DNA of 63,791 nucleotides, counting the filler, from Salisapilia sapeloensis CBS 127946 (taxonomy: Eukaryota > Protista > Oomycota): the NCBI GenBank assembly GCA_023334545.1. It is 6 parts of 6 records of this genome, joined end to end, with 100 filler letters (N's around TTAATTAATTAA, not from the genome) between each part and the next. Parts side by side here need not be neighbours in the genome. Positions count along the whole stretch, not along the records: positions 1 to 17,693 come from JAADVB010000335.1; 5 more parts are not named here. One strand, written 5' to 3'. Both the position numbers and the translations under genes were made by a program. The notes beneath the pieces were generated by a model. That model was given only the letters and a program-made list of their open reading frames with translations, searched no databases and had not been told where the DNA came from. Shown one piece after another: positions 1,125-17,693 of the stretch (positions are counted from its first letter, which is position 1; every line of letters starts with the position of its first letter).

Positions 1125-3113
1125 ATGGCGAAGTTCGAACTCGGAATCTCGTCTCCTCTAACACAAAGTGAAGAAGACGAGGCAGTTGTGAGCTGGAATG
1201 CACACTCTCCATGCACGACCAACGAAAGAGGATCACTGTTGCTGTTAAACCTGTACGTATACGAGGCAAAAGATTTGTCGATTCGTCCACTCTTTCAAGA
1301 CACTTATGACCATCTTGGCATGCACCTTCGCTGTTACTTGTTCCAATGCAGTAATCAAACTGTGCTATCTAAGATTGTGGAATCAGAGAGCAGCATTCAA
1401 GGCGAGTTAGAGAGTCCAGCTTGGAGACTCGATGGTGAACAGCTTCAGTTTCCACTAGATGATATTTTATCCAAATCAAAACCACAAGAGTACGCGATGG
1501 ACCTGCGACTCGTTGTAGAGATCGTCTGTGGCATTTTTGTCGTCTCCAGCACATCCTTATCACTTCTTTCCTGTCTTGAAAAAGCGGGTGTGGACATTGA
1601 AAAGCTGCATGAACAACCACACGAGTTTGGAAGCCCAGTCGGTAAACAATGGACGAATCTTGGCGGAGGTGAGAGTGGCAGCCTGTACGTGGCATTCACT
1701 ACTACTGCCAACGACACGTTGCATCAGGACGATACAGCATCATCGTTGTCTATGGGCGAGTCGGAAGACATGGATGACGATGAATTTGAAAGAAAGTTTT
1801 TGTGGCAGGAAGAGATAACGGATTCAGTCTACGAAGACCCTCGTATTAACGATAGTGACGGTGAGGGTGAAAGCTCCATTCCGAACATACAAGGCAAAAG
1901 ACAACGCGATATGATGGACACAGACGTCTGGGACTTTTACTGCAACGGTCTAGCAAGGAAAAGCACGCTCGATGGCTCATCCTCACACAAGGATGCCGTC
2001 TACGTTACTCCATCCAAGTCGCCCTGTGATAATTCATTCCCCAGTTCCGACAATCGCGTGTCCAGCATAGCTGGGAGTGAAGTTTTCGCTTTTAATGAAC
2101 GTATTCAGGATCTAGAGAACGCTCTGATGGATATCAAAGTAGAGGACTCCAAGTCTCCAACGACCGAAACGGATGTCGGGTGTCAGACGTTTCCTCAGTA
2201 CATGTACAGCAATACCGCAAGAGAAGGCTCTGGTATCATGCTTTTCGATCCATCAATGCTCGCTACACGATCAGGAGGCATGGCTACTGTCGAGGCGATG
2301 AGCAAAGCCGTATCTTACTACCCGCCGAAGACGCCATCACAAGAGAAGAAGAAAGACGGACGACGTCGCTCACTTCCGATCAATGCACTATATGGAAATC
2401 GAAACTTGGTGCCAAAGTCAAAAGCGAGACCGAATGTCAATGGCGGGTACAAGAAGACACAGATGCCGAGCCCATACACTACAGCAGCGGCAACTGTCGG
2501 TACACCGAACGTTGGCAAGCTGCATGTGCTCTTGGAGGATCCTATTCCAACGGCGAGCGAGACACAGACAGAGGAAGGTAGGCAGCGCAGTGTCTCGATG
2601 CACTCTAATTCAGATCTGCATCGAACGACAAGATCGACCTCTTCCTCCTCCTCCTCCGTTCGTTCGAGTAATTCATCCACCACGGACGTCAAGACACATG
2701 CATTTGGACGAGAGCGTTGTTCAAGCAACACATCGTCGGTCAATTCAAAAGACAGCTATCGATATGGGAAAGACCAAAAATCACGACAAAAGGAGAAGCG
2801 AAAGCACGTGGACAACAAATGGAACCAAGTGGTGATTCGAGGCACATTGTTCACCGTTGGGAAGCTACTGACGATTGGAAACGTCCCTGGTGTGGTTCGG
2901 TATATTGGTCCGACGCACTTGGGTGGTGGCAAGTGGCTGGGAGTGGAGTTATGTCGGCCGAAAGAAGGCGGACACACGGGATCGATCGACGGCTACAAGG
3001 TACGCGACATCTTCCCATCTCCTCATTCCTATCTAACCTCTCTCTTGTAGTATTTTGAGTGTGCACCAGGTCGAGGTGTCTTTGTGCGAGCAAGTGAGTT
3101 GGAAGGCAAGTAG
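1125..3113 (+). CDS. CAP-Gly domain protein (C-terminal CAP-Gly, long low-complexity N-terminus), 2 exons
   Basis: 641-aa ORF ends in GVVRYIGPTHLGGGKWLGVEL...GSIDGYK. Intron 3000-3050 (GT..CTAAC..TAG) joins YFECAPGRGVFVRASELEGK*, completing the CAP-Gly fold. Confidence 0.85.
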
Positions 3114-3165
3114 TCTTATATAGACAACAAGGAAAAGAATTGTGGTCTTGCAAAGCGTTTTGATT

Positions 3166-4544
3166 CTAGTTGTAAACCATGTACTTGGGCGTACTGGAGA
3201 ACTTTTGATATCCTTTGATGACCTTTTCAACACTTTCGAGAAAGTCTTTCTCACTCACGCTCTTGCGTCGAGCTCGAATGGCAAACATACCGGCTTCCGT
3301 ACAGACCGAGTGGAGCTCAGCACCAGTCGTATTCGGACAGAGACGAGCGATGAGCTCGAAACGAATGTTCCGGTCGCAGTTCATGGACTTGGCGTGAATG
3401 CGGAGGATCTGCGTACGACCTTCGAGCTCCGGGAGGTTGAACTCGACCTTTCGGTCCAATCGACCTGGACGCATGAGCGCCGGGTCGAGCGTATCCGGGC
3501 GGTTCGTCGCCATGAGCACCTTAATGTTACCACGCGGATCGAAACCATCGAGCTCCGTGACGATCTGGAGCATCGTCCGCTGGACTTCATTGTCCGTGCC
3601 ACCGTCCTCTCCGCCACTTCGAGCGCCACCGATGGCATCGACTTCATCGAAGAAGACGATACACGCCTTCTTGCTTCGAGCCATGGTGAAGAGCTCTCGG
3701 ACCATTCGAGCGCCTTCGCCAACGTACTTCTGGACGAGTTCACTACCGATGACACGGATGAAGCAGGCGTCCGTACGGTTCGCAACGGCCCGAGCAGAAA
3801 GTGTCTTACCCGTACCGGGTGGACCGTAGAGCAGGACACCCTTTGGAGGGTCGATACCTAGGTTGACGAAGCGTTCCGGGTGGAGAAGAGGGAGCTCGAC
3901 GACTTCACGCAGCTTCTCCAGCGCGTCTTTCGCACCTCCCACATCGTCGTACGTGACATCCGGCTTGTCCTCAACCGTCTATAGTGGTAATCATGTCGTT
4001 AGTCGGTGTACAGTAAACGCTTTAGATGACGACGTACCATGAGAGAGACCGTTGGATCGATTTTTGGCGGCAACGGGATCTGGATCGCATACTTGGTACG
4101 ATCGACACCGACGCGCATACCTTCTTCAATATCGGTCGGCGCGACCTTTTCACCGAGGCCAACGACGAACTTGGCGATCTGCTTGACGTTGATCATGTAC
4201 TTGGCGTCGTCTTCTCCCGGGTTAATGATCTTGGTACAGCGAGCGACTTGGAGCGGCTGCTCTTCCTGCATCATCTGCTTGTCGGACACGAGATCCCACT
4301 GGCTTGGGAGACTGAGACCCGTGTCACTCTCTTTGATGCCCACGAGATCGTTGACTGCGTTCTGAGCTTTCTTAATGTCGTCCTCCACGCGCTTAATTAC
4401 GCGAGAATACGGCCCGAGACCGTACGTTTTCAAGAGAGCGATGTCGCCTTCATCCAGGACGTTCTCCGGTCCGGCCATCAAGTCGTCCTCTTCGTCGTCA
4501 TAGTCCTTGGTGTTGGTCGTCTGGACTTCGCCTCGCTGCGCCAT
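3166..4544 (-). CDS. PSMC2: 26S proteasome AAA-ATPase subunit RPT1 (regulatory subunit 7), 2 exons
   Basis: Motifs [25 protein letters not shown], and the C-terminus [12 protein letters not shown]. Intron 3979-4037 joins PTVSLM to [18 protein letters not shown] at 4544 (MAQRGEV). Confidence 0.97.
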
Positions 4545-4648
4545 GTCGATAAGATTTTTTTCTTTTATGTGGAGAAAGAGTGAGAAAGAAAGAAAAGAAA
4601 AGAAAAAGAGAATTGTGTTCGTTTTATCATTTCCAACTATTTCGGACG

Positions 4649-4960
4649 ATGGCATCGGAGGAGGTGTCTACGAAGGTTGTGATGGCCGAGAAAGAGGACC
4701 CCAAGGATGAAAAGGTCGAAAAGGAAGAAAATGATAGTGAACAAGATGATGAGAGTAGTGAAGAGGAGGAGGATAGTGAAGATGAAAGTGAGAGTGGGGA
4801 GGAGGAACCTGTTGGCTTGGCGTATTTGTACAAGGACATGACGAATGAAGAGGAGGAGGAAGATGAAGATTATGAAGATGAGGGAGCGCCACCAGATGAA
4901 GATATTCCGGAAGAGGAAGAAGAAGACCGTCCTTCTAAAAAGCAAAAGACGAGCGAATAG
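4649..4960 (+). CDS. Small acidic nuclear protein (103 aa) with ANP32E-like H2A.Z-interaction motif
   Basis: ATG 4649. D/E-rich protein containing [28 protein letters not shown] and a basic C-terminal NLS-like RPSKKQK. Inr-like TCATTTCC at 4627. Confidence 0.7.
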
Positions 4961-6054
4961 AAGGAAATAAAGACCAGACTCGAGCATTACTTTCTACCAA
5001 AGTTATCTCTTATTTTAGATGCATTTGCGATATATTCGCTGGTCAGTACATCGCTACCTCTCACCAATCTGCTGCTCCATCCTACGGACTTGTCTACTAC
5101 TCTTGCTTTCATCTATTGTTGCAAGACTTGGAAACGATTTCCATCTAGTAGGCATGTTCGTTAGCCAAGCGCATCTTGACAGTCAAATATCTGAAGGAAA
5201 CGACCGCAACCTGATATACCAAAATTCTAGAGAATATAATGCATATAGCTACTGTGTGGTTGGGTCCCAAGCATTGTATCGGCATCGTGACCACCGTGAC
5301 CACGCTTAACGAGTTGTATGAAATATTATGTTACAAGATTTTGGTAGATCGTTTGCACAGATTGAAGCTTGGGAGCTGGTAAAAGATAAGCCGTTTAGAT
5401 ATTATTTATAAGGAAACAGCGCCATTTAGTCAGCATCCGGAAACCTGGACTGCTCATCAAATGAGCCAACTGATCGTAGAGTTTCTCATTCTCCTTCCTT
5501 GAGAATGGTCCTCCAATAGCATTAAGCACTCAAAGAGACTTACGATCTCGGCAAAATGCTGGCGGATTGTGAAGACTACTTCTGGTTCCATAGGTCTGCT
5601 TATAGACCGCTCACCTAGTGTGGTCACCTTGAGCTCGTATAAAGTCTTCTTGCCAAGTCATCAACAACCGAGTTATTCTTTTGGTAGCCCATTCAGTCTC
5701 ATTAATCAAACAATCTACGTTGATTTTGTAAGGCCTTTGCATGACTGTAACGACACGTTTAGTTGATACCAACGCTTTCAACATCTCTTTTATTGTTTCT
5801 CCACTAAAATGTACCATGAAAGTCAATAATCTGCTCATATGTCTTATAGTAGATAGCGCCAACGTGTATATGCCAGATACAGTTAGGCTCTAAACATTAC
5901 TCATCGCTTATTGTTAACGAGTGAAATTGTTTCATTGGACTTACCTTGTGCGCCTCAGAATTTTCTCGACTTGCGCTACAGCGAGCAGAACTAGAACGAT
6001 ATTCTGGTATGCTATCTCGCCATGTTGTAGAAACTCAGGCTCATATCAAAGATG

Positions 6055-7469
6055 TCACTCGTACTCGTTTTTCACCAAAAAAAAGAAGCTTTCAAATAGT
6101 TTCCTCGCATTTGGATCCCAAGCCGTGCTAGCAAGATGATTTCCTTTGACACGGTAGACATACCATCTTCCTTTCTCGAAATACTCACTCTCTTGATTCA
6201 TACTATCTACAGATGTGTGCGTTTCACTGCGGGCGCGAAGCTTATGTCCAGATGGTGGCACCCCTTGCAACGCTGCTTCAGACTCGAGTAAAGGAGCTGC
6301 TGCTTCCTCAGTAGATTCCATAGCATGTTGCAGATCGGACGGTGATGGAAACCACGGGCAATCCATTGATTTGACATTGACGATTCCGTCGTTCGAATGC
6401 CAATCATCCGTAGTGCAGTGCTTAAAAGACTTTGGAACAGATTTCGTCACCTCACTCAGTAATCGGCCAACCCAATAGAGTGCCGATAACCACGAAAAGT
6501 TATGCTTCTTCGCCCTGCTCCATATATAAATTGATAATAGCGAAGTAACCAGTACCCGCTGAAGTGCATTGGCTTCCAACCACGCAGGGTTATAAAGTAA
6601 TAGCATGATTCCAAGGAATGCCAATACCTCTAGCTTTGGTGTATGTGCTGAATCGTATGATGTTGCGATGCTTAACAAGTAGATTTTGTCCATTTCTTGA
6701 AGTAACTGATTGCGCCGAACGCATTCACTAGGTAGGATGTTATGAAGTAGATTCTCTCTCTGCATCGTCGTATTGGCACTAACACCAATTAGATCGAAGA
6801 GTGAATGGTCTCTCCACTGCTCCATCCGCATATCGTACAAACACCGCAACGGTGGAAATATGGTGTACAATTTAAACCAAGAGAGAACGGCACCGCAGAA
6901 AACTTTGGCCCGAAGTTTAAATGGAGCTTCGGCGTCATGAATACCTAGGATGTATGGAAGTGTCGTGCCGGTCAATGGACTAGCAATACAAGTGATACTT
7001 CGAACCCATGAGGCGTCGGACCCTACACGAAAGAAATCTTCGCAAAGTAGCTGGTATAATTCCAAAGCGGCTGTGCCGCCACAGCTATGACCGACAAGAT
7101 GAACAGGAACTTGGCTGCTCCATTCGAGAAAGCCTTTGTCATAACTCAAGCCGTAGCGACGATGGCGATATTTCTTTGAATGCTTTTCTCCATAGTCAAC
7201 AGTACCGCCATACAGTTGATAGAACGCTTCGCATGCGCGATCATGGTTTGAAGTGAAAGCTCCACAATCAATCATGATACAATTTGGATTTAGCTCTTTC
7301 AAGTCATCTTCTGGCCAGTAATTGAACGCACGACCGTACAAAGGTCTAGTTTGTCCATACCCAAAGGCACCTACATTAAACTAAAGGTAAGTTCATTCGA
7401 TTGGGGAGACTGCAAAATATATTTTGCACCGTGGATGAGGACAACTGGGAACTTCGTCTTGATCGACAT
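6055..7469 (-). CDS. Lipase-like alpha/beta hydrolase, 2 exons
   Basis: Exon 1 MSIKTKFPVVLIHG, intron 7371-7429, then AFGYGQTRPLYG. Nucleophile elbow VHLVGHSCGG, NDGIV (Asp) and NHLAS (His). Confidence 0.85.
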
Positions 7470-10548: not shown

Positions 10549-11154
10549 CTATAGAGCCTTAATGGGTGCCATGGCAGCTTCGATGCGAAGTACAGCTTCC
10601 TTGAGCTCTTTTAGATCTTTGGAAAAGTCTTCTCTTTCCATGTGGATGGCCCGTTTCCTCTCATGTAGCTCGCCCAAGACGATGGCATCGCGTCTTTTCA
10701 GGATTTCTTCCTGTACCTCATCCGCTCGGTTCGGTGCGAAGAGGTACGCTTCTGGAAATGGACTACCTTGTCCAGCCGTCTGGACTTCAATGCAGCAGAT
10801 ACCAAAGTATCTATGTAAAATCGACTGACGAACATTGACATCTTGGATACGGTCCAAAGGAATGAATTTCGAGGCATGATTGATAAAACCTCGTTCGAAA
10901 ATGAGTTTCGTATCCGTCAGACGACATTTTTGGGACGTCACTTCTTGTTGGATGAGCCATCGGGCAGCAAGGAAGAGAGCTGACATGAATATCGCTACTG
11001 GCCAGAAAATCACCACGACTGCAATCGTAATAAGTGACAAAGCGAGCGCCGTATGTGTCCAAACAAAGCTGATGCCTCCATCAAAGTCAAATGTGATGGC
11101 GTACGAGTTTTCGCTCGGAGATTCCAAAAGCAATGATGCGTCTTCCGTCGTCAT
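10549..11154 (-). CDS. Membrane protein with bacterial PH domain (bPH_2/YdbS-like)
   Basis: Two hydrophobic helices followed by LTDTKLIFERGFINHASKFIPLDRIQDVNVRQSILHRYFGICCIEVQTAG. Single exon, 201 aa. Confidence 0.75.
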   Translation of the reverse strand: MTTEDASLLLESPSENSYAITFDFDGGISFVWTHTALALSLITIAVVVIFWPVAIFMSALFLAARWLIQQEVTSQKCRLTDTKLIFERGFINHASKFIPLDRIQDVNVRQSILHRYFGICCIEVQTAGQGSPFPEAYLFAPNRADEVQEEILKRRDAIVLGELHERKRAIHMEREDFSKDLKELKEAVLRIEAAMAPIKAL

Positions 11155-17125: not shown

Positions 17126-17693
17126 TTACTGCCTTTTGAGCCATGGAGGGAGGATGCTTCCGAATAGAGGAATTTTGATACTGTCCACTTCGCTTTTCAG
17201 CGGCACTCGCAGCAACGCATCATCCACAAACGCACTTTCGCGTGTTGGGACTTCAATTTCTCCCGTGCCGAGTTCTACCCACTGGGCTTGACGCTCTTCC
17301 ATGTCCACTGGTCCAATCTCCGTTCCCTTTTCTTGGAATTTCGGCGCTTCACCAACGTACAGCACTTTGCTTGCGCCCATGACGCTAGAGGAAAGAGTGC
17401 CCTTCGTTTGCACCACAGTGGTTCCGTGACCAGTTACATTGACTTTTGTCCAGTCGGACATGAGATCGGCACTGTCGACGAACCCACTGCCGATGATAGT
17501 AATCTTCTGCTTTCCCAGACCTTCGTGCTCTCGGTGGAGCATGCTGCTACTCCTGCGAGACATACGAGAGAGCATCTCGTCCTGCGACATGGCAGACCGA
17601 AGACGCACATCTCCTGAGCCAGCGATCGACAGCTTGCTCTTCTTCACACCAATCGTGTCTTTCGTCAGGATGTCGACGTTGCCAGCTCCTGCC
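17126..17693 (-). CDS. DUF2807 (GIN/adhesin-head-like) repeat protein, 5'-truncated by contig end
   Basis: AGAGNVDI, LSIAGSGDV, ITIIGSGFV, VNVTGHGTTVV and GTLSSSVMGASKVLYVGEAP repeats. The frame is open up to the linker. Confidence 0.7.

Follow-up and report, generated by a model that had tools for sequence, protein, structure and literature searches.

We identified in the oomycete Salisapilia sapeloensis a small intron-less gene whose 103-residue polyacidic product bears a short segment resembling the H2A.Z-interacting domain (ZID) of the vertebrate chaperone ANP32E. The gene lies in a window of 63,791 nucleotides, by which we mean the whole stretch of DNA analyzed, composed of six parts of the genome of strain CBS 127946 joined with filler. 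RNA contigs establish it as a real and separate small unspliced transcription unit, and the similarity of its product to the ANP32E ZID appears to go beyond what an acidic composition would yield, although a scan of this size leaves its significance modest. We tentatively posit, with a confidence falling just short of even, that the protein might act as a small chaperone that binds dimers of H2A-type histones with H2B by means of a ZID-like helix and a DEF/Y anchor.

A small unspliced gene head-to-head with RPT1

The acidic gene and its immediate surroundings comprise the following features:

4649 to 4960, plus strand: coding sequence of the 103-residue polyacidic protein, from the ORF list, the sequence, RNA contigs with 0 differences and without joints, and a reading frame kept in the sister organism
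4617 to 4972, plus strand: smallest span of the transcript, with 32 nt or more ahead of the ATG and some 10-12 nt past the stop, from RNA contigs, from which strand and true transcript ends are not derivable
4966 to 4971, plus strand: AATAAA hexamer, seen in the sequence just past the stop; the RNA contigs stop at 4968-4972
3166 to 4544, minus strand: RPT1/PSMC2 (26S proteasome ATPase subunit 7), two exons, with the ATG at 4544-4542 and the intron at 3979-4037
4545 to 4648, no strand assigned: head-to-head intergenic region of 104 nt between the acidic gene and RPT1, from the sequence; RNA contigs of both genes enter it

The ORF starts with an ATG at 4649-4651 (position -3 being A and position +4 G) and continues without an intron through 103 codons to a TAG at 4958-4960; the start, the stop and the sequence are all as the initial annotation had claimed for this plus-strand ORF. 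That annotation had proposed RNA-seq as a check on the interval, and such support was obtained in the form of unspliced contigs in RNA assemblies from the same organism: those of X4 (354 nt, 4617-4970) and X2 (327 nt, 4631-4957) run over the ORF with no differences and no joints. Both behave as assemblies of RNA, for their contig over RPT1 passes from 3142-3978 directly to 4038-4650 and skips 59 nt, the RPT1 intron (3979-4037, GT..AG on the minus strand), which is spliced out in the RNA contigs of four runs. Contigs of X7 (4647-4972) and X6 (4665-4968) also cover the acidic ORF; these are RNA assemblies from other studies that carry a different organism label and represent a close relative, here termed the sister organism. 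Beyond the gene, RNA coverage is nearly nil from about 5030 to 5600, and a single low-depth contig is seen at 5007-5160. Contig depth over the acidic ORF, which is a poor measure, amounts to a third to two thirds of that over RPT1. The AATAAA hexamer at the downstream end may have a role in the formation of the 3' end.

It had further been claimed that the LRR typical of ANP32 proteins is absent, with no room for it upstream, and both parts of this claim hold. A Pfam scan of the protein at E<=10 recovered no LRR or other domain, its sole output being a 9-bit noise match to GEMI5. The ATGs of the acidic gene and RPT1 are separated by 104 nt (4545-4648), the very distance that had been given, and hence no upstream exon fits. 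Moreover, the contigs on the acidic ORF are separate, short (327-354 nt) and unspliced, which points to a transcription unit of its own and thereby settles the absence of the LRR.

In the neighboring gene, exon 2 of RPT1 is 96% identical to its counterparts in Aphanomyces and Phytophthora, 94.6% to that of Albugo and about 90% to those of diatoms. The intergenic region contains a purine-rich low-complexity GAAA/GAAAA tract (4571-4616) that was skipped as repeats in the RNA mapping. Going by the contigs, the transcripts of RPT1 and the acidic gene may overlap head-to-head by ~20-30 nt. Certain deeper RNA contigs match RPT1 only at 3442-3522, 3453-3488 and 3798-3831, with 4-12 differences; these presumably stem from transcripts of paralogous proteasomal AAA-ATPases and make the depth at those positions too high.

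The head-to-head arrangement with RPT1, along with the fact that the RNA assemblies with one of the two genes also contain the other, at a similar contig depth, raises the alternative of a Sem1/DSS1-like, proteasome-linked small acidic protein that is co-regulated with RPT1 via a 104-nt bidirectional promoter. Sem1/DSS1 is indeed a small, acidic and disordered protein, in whose family the conserved acidic segments contain Trp. However, the product of the S. sapeloensis gene has no tryptophan and gives no match to the Pfam family DSS1_SEM1 (PF05160) at E<=10. Further, the adjacency to RPT1 is missing in Phytophthora ramorum, Saprolegnia parasitica and Aphanomyces euteiches, whose RPT1 loci have different neighbors and no acidic ORF, and the pairing with RPT1 hence looks local and recent. 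We regard this alternative as barely credible.

Resemblance of the acidic protein to the ANP32E ZID

The protein is composed to 47.6% of D/E and to 9.7% of K/R, and features six S/T-x-x-D/E sites. Hydrophobic residues are few, and those of its C-terminal half gather in a single cluster, which together with a tyrosine further downstream (Tyr75) falls in the 30-residue stretch G50-G79. A single-sequence AlphaFold2 model is disordered (pLDDT 61, pTM 0.12), with residues 18-20 and 58-60 alone being helical at low confidence, the latter lying within the cluster. Three elements of the C-terminal half bear on the comparison with ANP32E:

4811 to 4840, plus strand: ZID-like hydrophobic core V55-G-L-A-Y-L-Y-K-D-M64, from PDB alignments and the residue roles reported by Mao et al. 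2014
4847 to 4885, plus strand: acidic run E67-D74, followed by Tyr75 and E76-G79, which aligns with ANP32E DEEDDDDY235VEEG
4937 to 4948, plus strand: KKQK basic patch K97-K-Q-K100, from a regular-expression match to the monopartite NLS pattern K-(K/R)-x-(K/R)

A phmmer search of the whole protein against all of the PDB returned one match at E<=10, the ANP32E chain 4NFT_E (E=3.4). When the 35-residue core region (residues 48-82) was used against 177,635 PDB sequences, it recovered two matches, both of them ANP32E, namely 4CAY_C (E=0.014, 19 bits) and 4NFT_E; neither the reversed nor the shuffled core matched any PDB sequence at E<=10. The alignment with 4CAY_C pairs a 28-residue stretch of the query with HMEVGLSYLMKEEIQD-EEDDDDYVEEG, and the ANP32E sequence that the initial annotation had quoted agrees with the PDB chains. 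In Smith-Waterman comparisons with the 25-residue ZID the protein scored 66, against a mean of 36 (sd 4.3) for composition-preserving shuffles; this score was reached by none of the 20,000 shuffles of the query and by one of the 20,000 shuffles of the ZID. The outcome of these shuffles and controls shows that acidity does not account for the match to ANP32E. The chance level is of the order of 1e-4 per acidic protein, at which a scan of ~250,000 windows could yield such a match once or more.

At the level of individual residues, V55-G-L57-A-Y-L60-Y61-K of the core is aligned with V-G-L218-S-Y-L221-M222-K of ANP32E, such that L57, L60 and Y61 take the positions of L218, L221 and M222, two being identical and the third showing a hydrophobic substitution of Tyr for Met. 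In ANP32E, residues 214-224 constitute a short helix packed on the alpha3 and alphaC helices of H2A.Z (Mao et al. 2014, PMC3975505), to which L218, L221 and M222 provide the contacts: L218A and L221A lower the binding, and the double mutation L218A/M222A abolishes it (PMC3975505). The segment with this hydrophobic triad, by which a ZID is recognized, is accordingly represented in the acidic protein, residues 58-60 being its sole helical part in the single-sequence model.

The second element relates to a more widespread type of histone-binding motif. The DEF/Y motif is an uninterrupted run of D/E residues with a single aromatic residue after it; the latter enters a hydrophobic pocket of H2B, and the acidic residues cap an arginine finger (Wang et al. 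2019, PMC6544321). As the initial annotation had stated, such motifs recur in other H2A.Z chaperones: they are common to ANP32E, YL1, Swr1, Spt16 and Chz1, and on their own confer no preference for H2A.Z (PMC6544321). The segment E67-E-E-E-E-D-E-D74-Y75 belongs to this class by the published definition. The distance from the first Leu of the core to the Tyr is nearly that of ANP32E: L57 and Y75 are 18 residues apart, where ANP32E has 17, a value that the sister organism matches through the loss of one Glu. Finally, an acidic region combined with a basic nuclear-import patch, as in the C-termini of ANP32-type proteins, is found in the acidic protein, where the KKQK patch near the C-terminus is predicted on general grounds to work as an NLS.

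The initial annotation had presented the protein as an isolated ANP32E ZID. What stands of this is the specific similarity of the core, the identity of two of the three contact residues and the DEF/Y tyrosine; the implied shared descent fares less well, and the match more likely reflects a short linear motif that an acidic tail acquired by convergence. Published descriptions restrict ANP32E to higher eukaryotes or call it "mammal-exclusive" (PMC3975505, PMC6544321), which renders a convergent origin the more economical explanation. Moreover, as the acidic protein has no N-terminal LRR, it is not a member of the ANP32 family.

Divergence in the sister organism and the search for relatives

The contigs of the sister organism differ from the acidic ORF at 18-20 substituted positions and by a single 3-nt deletion that keeps the frame and takes out one Glu of the E67-E71 run. 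Fifteen of the substitutions are listed, the remaining three to five probably being near the contig ends; they give rise to K15E, E21K, K22R, S30K, Q32E, S37N, K62T and P82T, along with five synonymous changes. Their distribution is uneven: codons 6-37 (96 nt) account for 11 of the listed differences, and codons 38-103 (198 nt) for four (Fisher p=0.001). The lower frequency in codons 38-103 indicates constraint on the half that contains the basic patch as well as the motif with its Tyr anchor; within the ZID-like core itself K62T is the sole listed change. The N-terminal half, in turn, drifts at about the neutral rate with its charged character kept.

The overall pattern of divergence bears on the alternative that the gene is an orphan of recent origin and rapid evolution. 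Its transcript would then either act as an RNA or encode an acidic product that lacks a specific partner, and the observed conservation would reflect nothing other than a short divergence time. In line with this, the nucleotide divergence of the acidic ORF is about 6% as against 2% for RPT1, and six of the 15 listed differences fall in third codon positions, with no overall third-position excess, whereas all listed differences in RPT1 are at third positions. Further, one close relative alone is known to share the gene, which is not in public protein collections. However, the indel is in frame, the start codon has a good context, the RNA contig depth, poor measure though it is, reaches a third to two thirds of that over RPT1, and the differences are significantly fewer in precisely the half that bears the motif and the DEF/Y anchor together with the NLS. 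Taken together, we consider an orphan of this kind quite improbable.

Searches for more distant relatives were conducted at several levels. An exhaustive phmmer search of the acidic protein against 1.84 billion representative proteins gave 0 matches at E<=0.001, a weak test for an acidic query of 103 residues, and a word-index protein search with residues 38-90 produced 1443 candidates, none of them at E<=10. Exact-sequence look-ups of the ORF, of a longer GTG-initiated ORF and of ten 5'-extended partial versions showed these to be absent from public protein collections. In the ESM Atlas, both the whole protein and residues 46-103 retrieved sub-threshold prothymosin-like and unnamed plant clusters only. 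A protein-based metagenome scan revealed no relative, and the degenerate DNA pattern for VGL[AS]YL[YF]K[DE] was found in metagenomes in no acidic context among the at least 120 matches listed. No such acidic ORF is present at the lipase-like loci of Pythium oligandrum and Plasmopara halstedii either. These negatives are weak, coming from a short low-complexity query with E-values scaled to billions of sequences and, in the other oomycetes, from the loci of the neighboring genes only.

Thus, as regards the conservation in related oomycetes on which the initial annotation had staked its proposal, the core is kept in the sister organism, while no homolog was found in the protein databases, or in the vicinity of RPT1 and of the lipase-like gene among five other oomycetes (Phytophthora, Saprolegnia, Aphanomyces, Pythium and Plasmopara). 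Conservation of the acidic gene is established for one close relative only.

The lipase-like gene that served as the second landmark in these comparisons (6055-7341, minus strand; Pfam Lip_C) is tail-to-tail with the acidic gene. Its best matches are oomycete proteins of ~41% identity, which often occur there as tandem pairs. Together with the RPT1 identities, this marks the source as an oomycete-like stramenopile to which nothing in the protein collections is closely related. The listed TTG start of the lipase-like gene is not real, and the coding region probably begins at an internal Met or in an upstream exon. In Plasmopara halstedii an annotated 92-residue gene (L134 12197-12475, minus strand) occupies the matching position, tail-to-tail with the lipase-like gene; we rejected it as a counterpart, its product being hydrophobic and unrelated.

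Predicted function and other genes of the region

The acidic protein is intrinsically disordered and probably nuclear. We envisage that its hydrophobic cluster V55-M64 would fold upon binding into a short helix, from which L57, L60 and Y61 would pack on alpha3/alphaC of H2A.Z in the manner of L218, L221 and M222 of ANP32E. About 11 residues downstream, the acidic run and Tyr75 would provide the DEF/Y anchor, with the Tyr inserted into the H2B pocket and the acidic residues capping the arginine finger. The flanking Glu/Asp/Ser tracts, which bear the six S/T-x-x-D/E sites, might mimic DNA and cover the DNA-binding face of the dimer, and KKQK would direct nuclear import. H2A.Z is pan-eukaryotic, and its extended, glycine-less alphaC helix, the feature through which a ZID prefers H2A.Z-H2B, is reported to be conserved in all species (PMC3975505); hence the target surface should exist in this organism. 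Insertion of a glycine into alphaC weakens the binding of ANP32E.

Two features count against a ZID-type function, namely the presence of Tyr in place of Met at the third contact position and the K62T change inside the motif in the sister organism. A genuine preference for H2A.Z over H2A is the weakest step of the scheme, plausible but on balance doubtful. The comparison with SET/TAF-I beta offers both a precedent and a reason for caution. In that protein a stretch of the acidic C-terminal tail was likewise spotted by its similarity to the ANP32E ZID, and its deletion abolishes histone binding; however, the stretch is required for H2A and H2B as well as for H2A.Z, which counsels care regarding the H2A.Z specificity of the acidic protein. 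Unlike the latter, SET has a folded NAP domain.

The closest parallel remains the ANP32E ZID itself (4CAY chain C, 4NFT chain E). In both cases an acidic tail features G-E-E-E-(x)-V-G-L-[AS]-Y-L-[MY]-K, followed by an acidic run with a Tyr 17-18 residues past the first Leu, then E-E/D-G, and a basic import patch near the C-terminus, with two of the three mutation-sensitive hydrophobic residues being identical. In contrast to ANP32E, with its 268 residues, the acidic protein has 103 and no LRR; Met222 is replaced by Tyr and Ile226 is without an exact counterpart; and the protein comes from a stramenopile, its histone binding being a prediction from sequence. With the other DEF/Y binders (Chz1-C, YL1/Swc2, Swr1-Z and the Spt16 C-terminal domain) it shares a D/E run with one aromatic residue (E67-D74, Y75) set in a disordered acidic region, but it has neither a CHZ motif (PF09649, Chz1/HIRIP3) nor another such domain at Pfam E<=10. 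These binders are regarded as evolutionarily unrelated, and thus constitute a class defined by function rather than a family.

A different picture emerges if the protein is instead a generic polyanion of the prothymosin-alpha type, which would escort or buffer basic proteins, such as the linker histone, core histones and ribosomal proteins, mainly by charge, with the ZID match being a coincidence in a Glu-rich sequence. Linker histone H1 is a known partner of prothymosin. The acidic protein resembles prothymosin alpha and parathymosin in its similar size (103 residues), in being roughly half acidic (about 48% D/E) and fully disordered, and in its C-terminal basic patch of the KKQK(T) type; human prothymosin alpha ends in ...TKKQKTDEDD. 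Its closest clusters in the ESM Atlas are those of prothymosin/parathymosin, at 0.83-0.84 and below the threshold for evidence, and both the near-neutral rate of its N-terminal half and the lack of a wider family in the protein searches accord with a protein that acts by charge. Against this stand the lack of a match to Pfam Prothymosin (PF03247) at E<=10, the location of the hydrophobic/aromatic cluster and Tyr75 in the better-conserved half, and the similarity of that cluster to ANP32E far beyond composition. Prothymosin is not known to contain a hydrophobic cluster or any aromatic residue. We therefore hold this alternative to be unlikely, though far from negligible. Were the match coincidental, the gene would simply be one more unannotated acidic nuclear protein.

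Returning to the chaperone proposal, its fullest form is that this stramenopile lineage has a free-standing H2A.Z-H2B chaperone of ~100 residues, which unites a ZID-type helix, a DEF/Y anchor, DNA-mimicking acidic tracts and an NLS; we offer this as a possibility with the odds lying appreciably against it. Chaperones devoted to H2A.Z have been described in fungi (Chz1) and vertebrates (ANP32E), whereas reviews state that no dedicated H2A.Z chaperone or ANP32E ortholog has been reported in plants, and a survey of Physarum found neither Chz1 nor ANP32E. What is at issue is the escort and eviction of H2A.Z in the majority of eukaryotes, apart from the action of the SWR1 and INO80 remodelers. If a chaperone of this type is present, the ANP32E mode of recognizing H2A.Z would work without a folded scaffold, and would either have arisen independently outside animals or be far older than thought. 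If the binding occurs via the two contacts used by ANP32E, the recognition module would be a portable short linear motif with no need for the LRR scaffold. Such motifs could then emerge in any acidic tail, and small acidic ORFs overlooked by annotation and homology searches might conceal histone chaperones in many lineages. The protein would also offer structural studies of how H2A.Z is recognized a natural peptide of very small size.

Certain other ORFs of the region merit mention in their own right. A 641-residue Ser-rich ORF at 1125-3050 (plus strand) codes for a C-terminal CAP-Gly domain (E=2.7e-8), its exact sequence being absent from the public gene collection. On the minus strand, the ORF at 10549-11154 contains a bPH_2 (bacterial PH) domain (E=3.7e-14) and that at 17126-17647 a DUF2807 (putative autotransporter adhesin head GIN) domain (E=1.5e-8). 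Both domains are usually bacterial, and these two ORFs could represent either horizontally acquired genes or families typical of the lineage.
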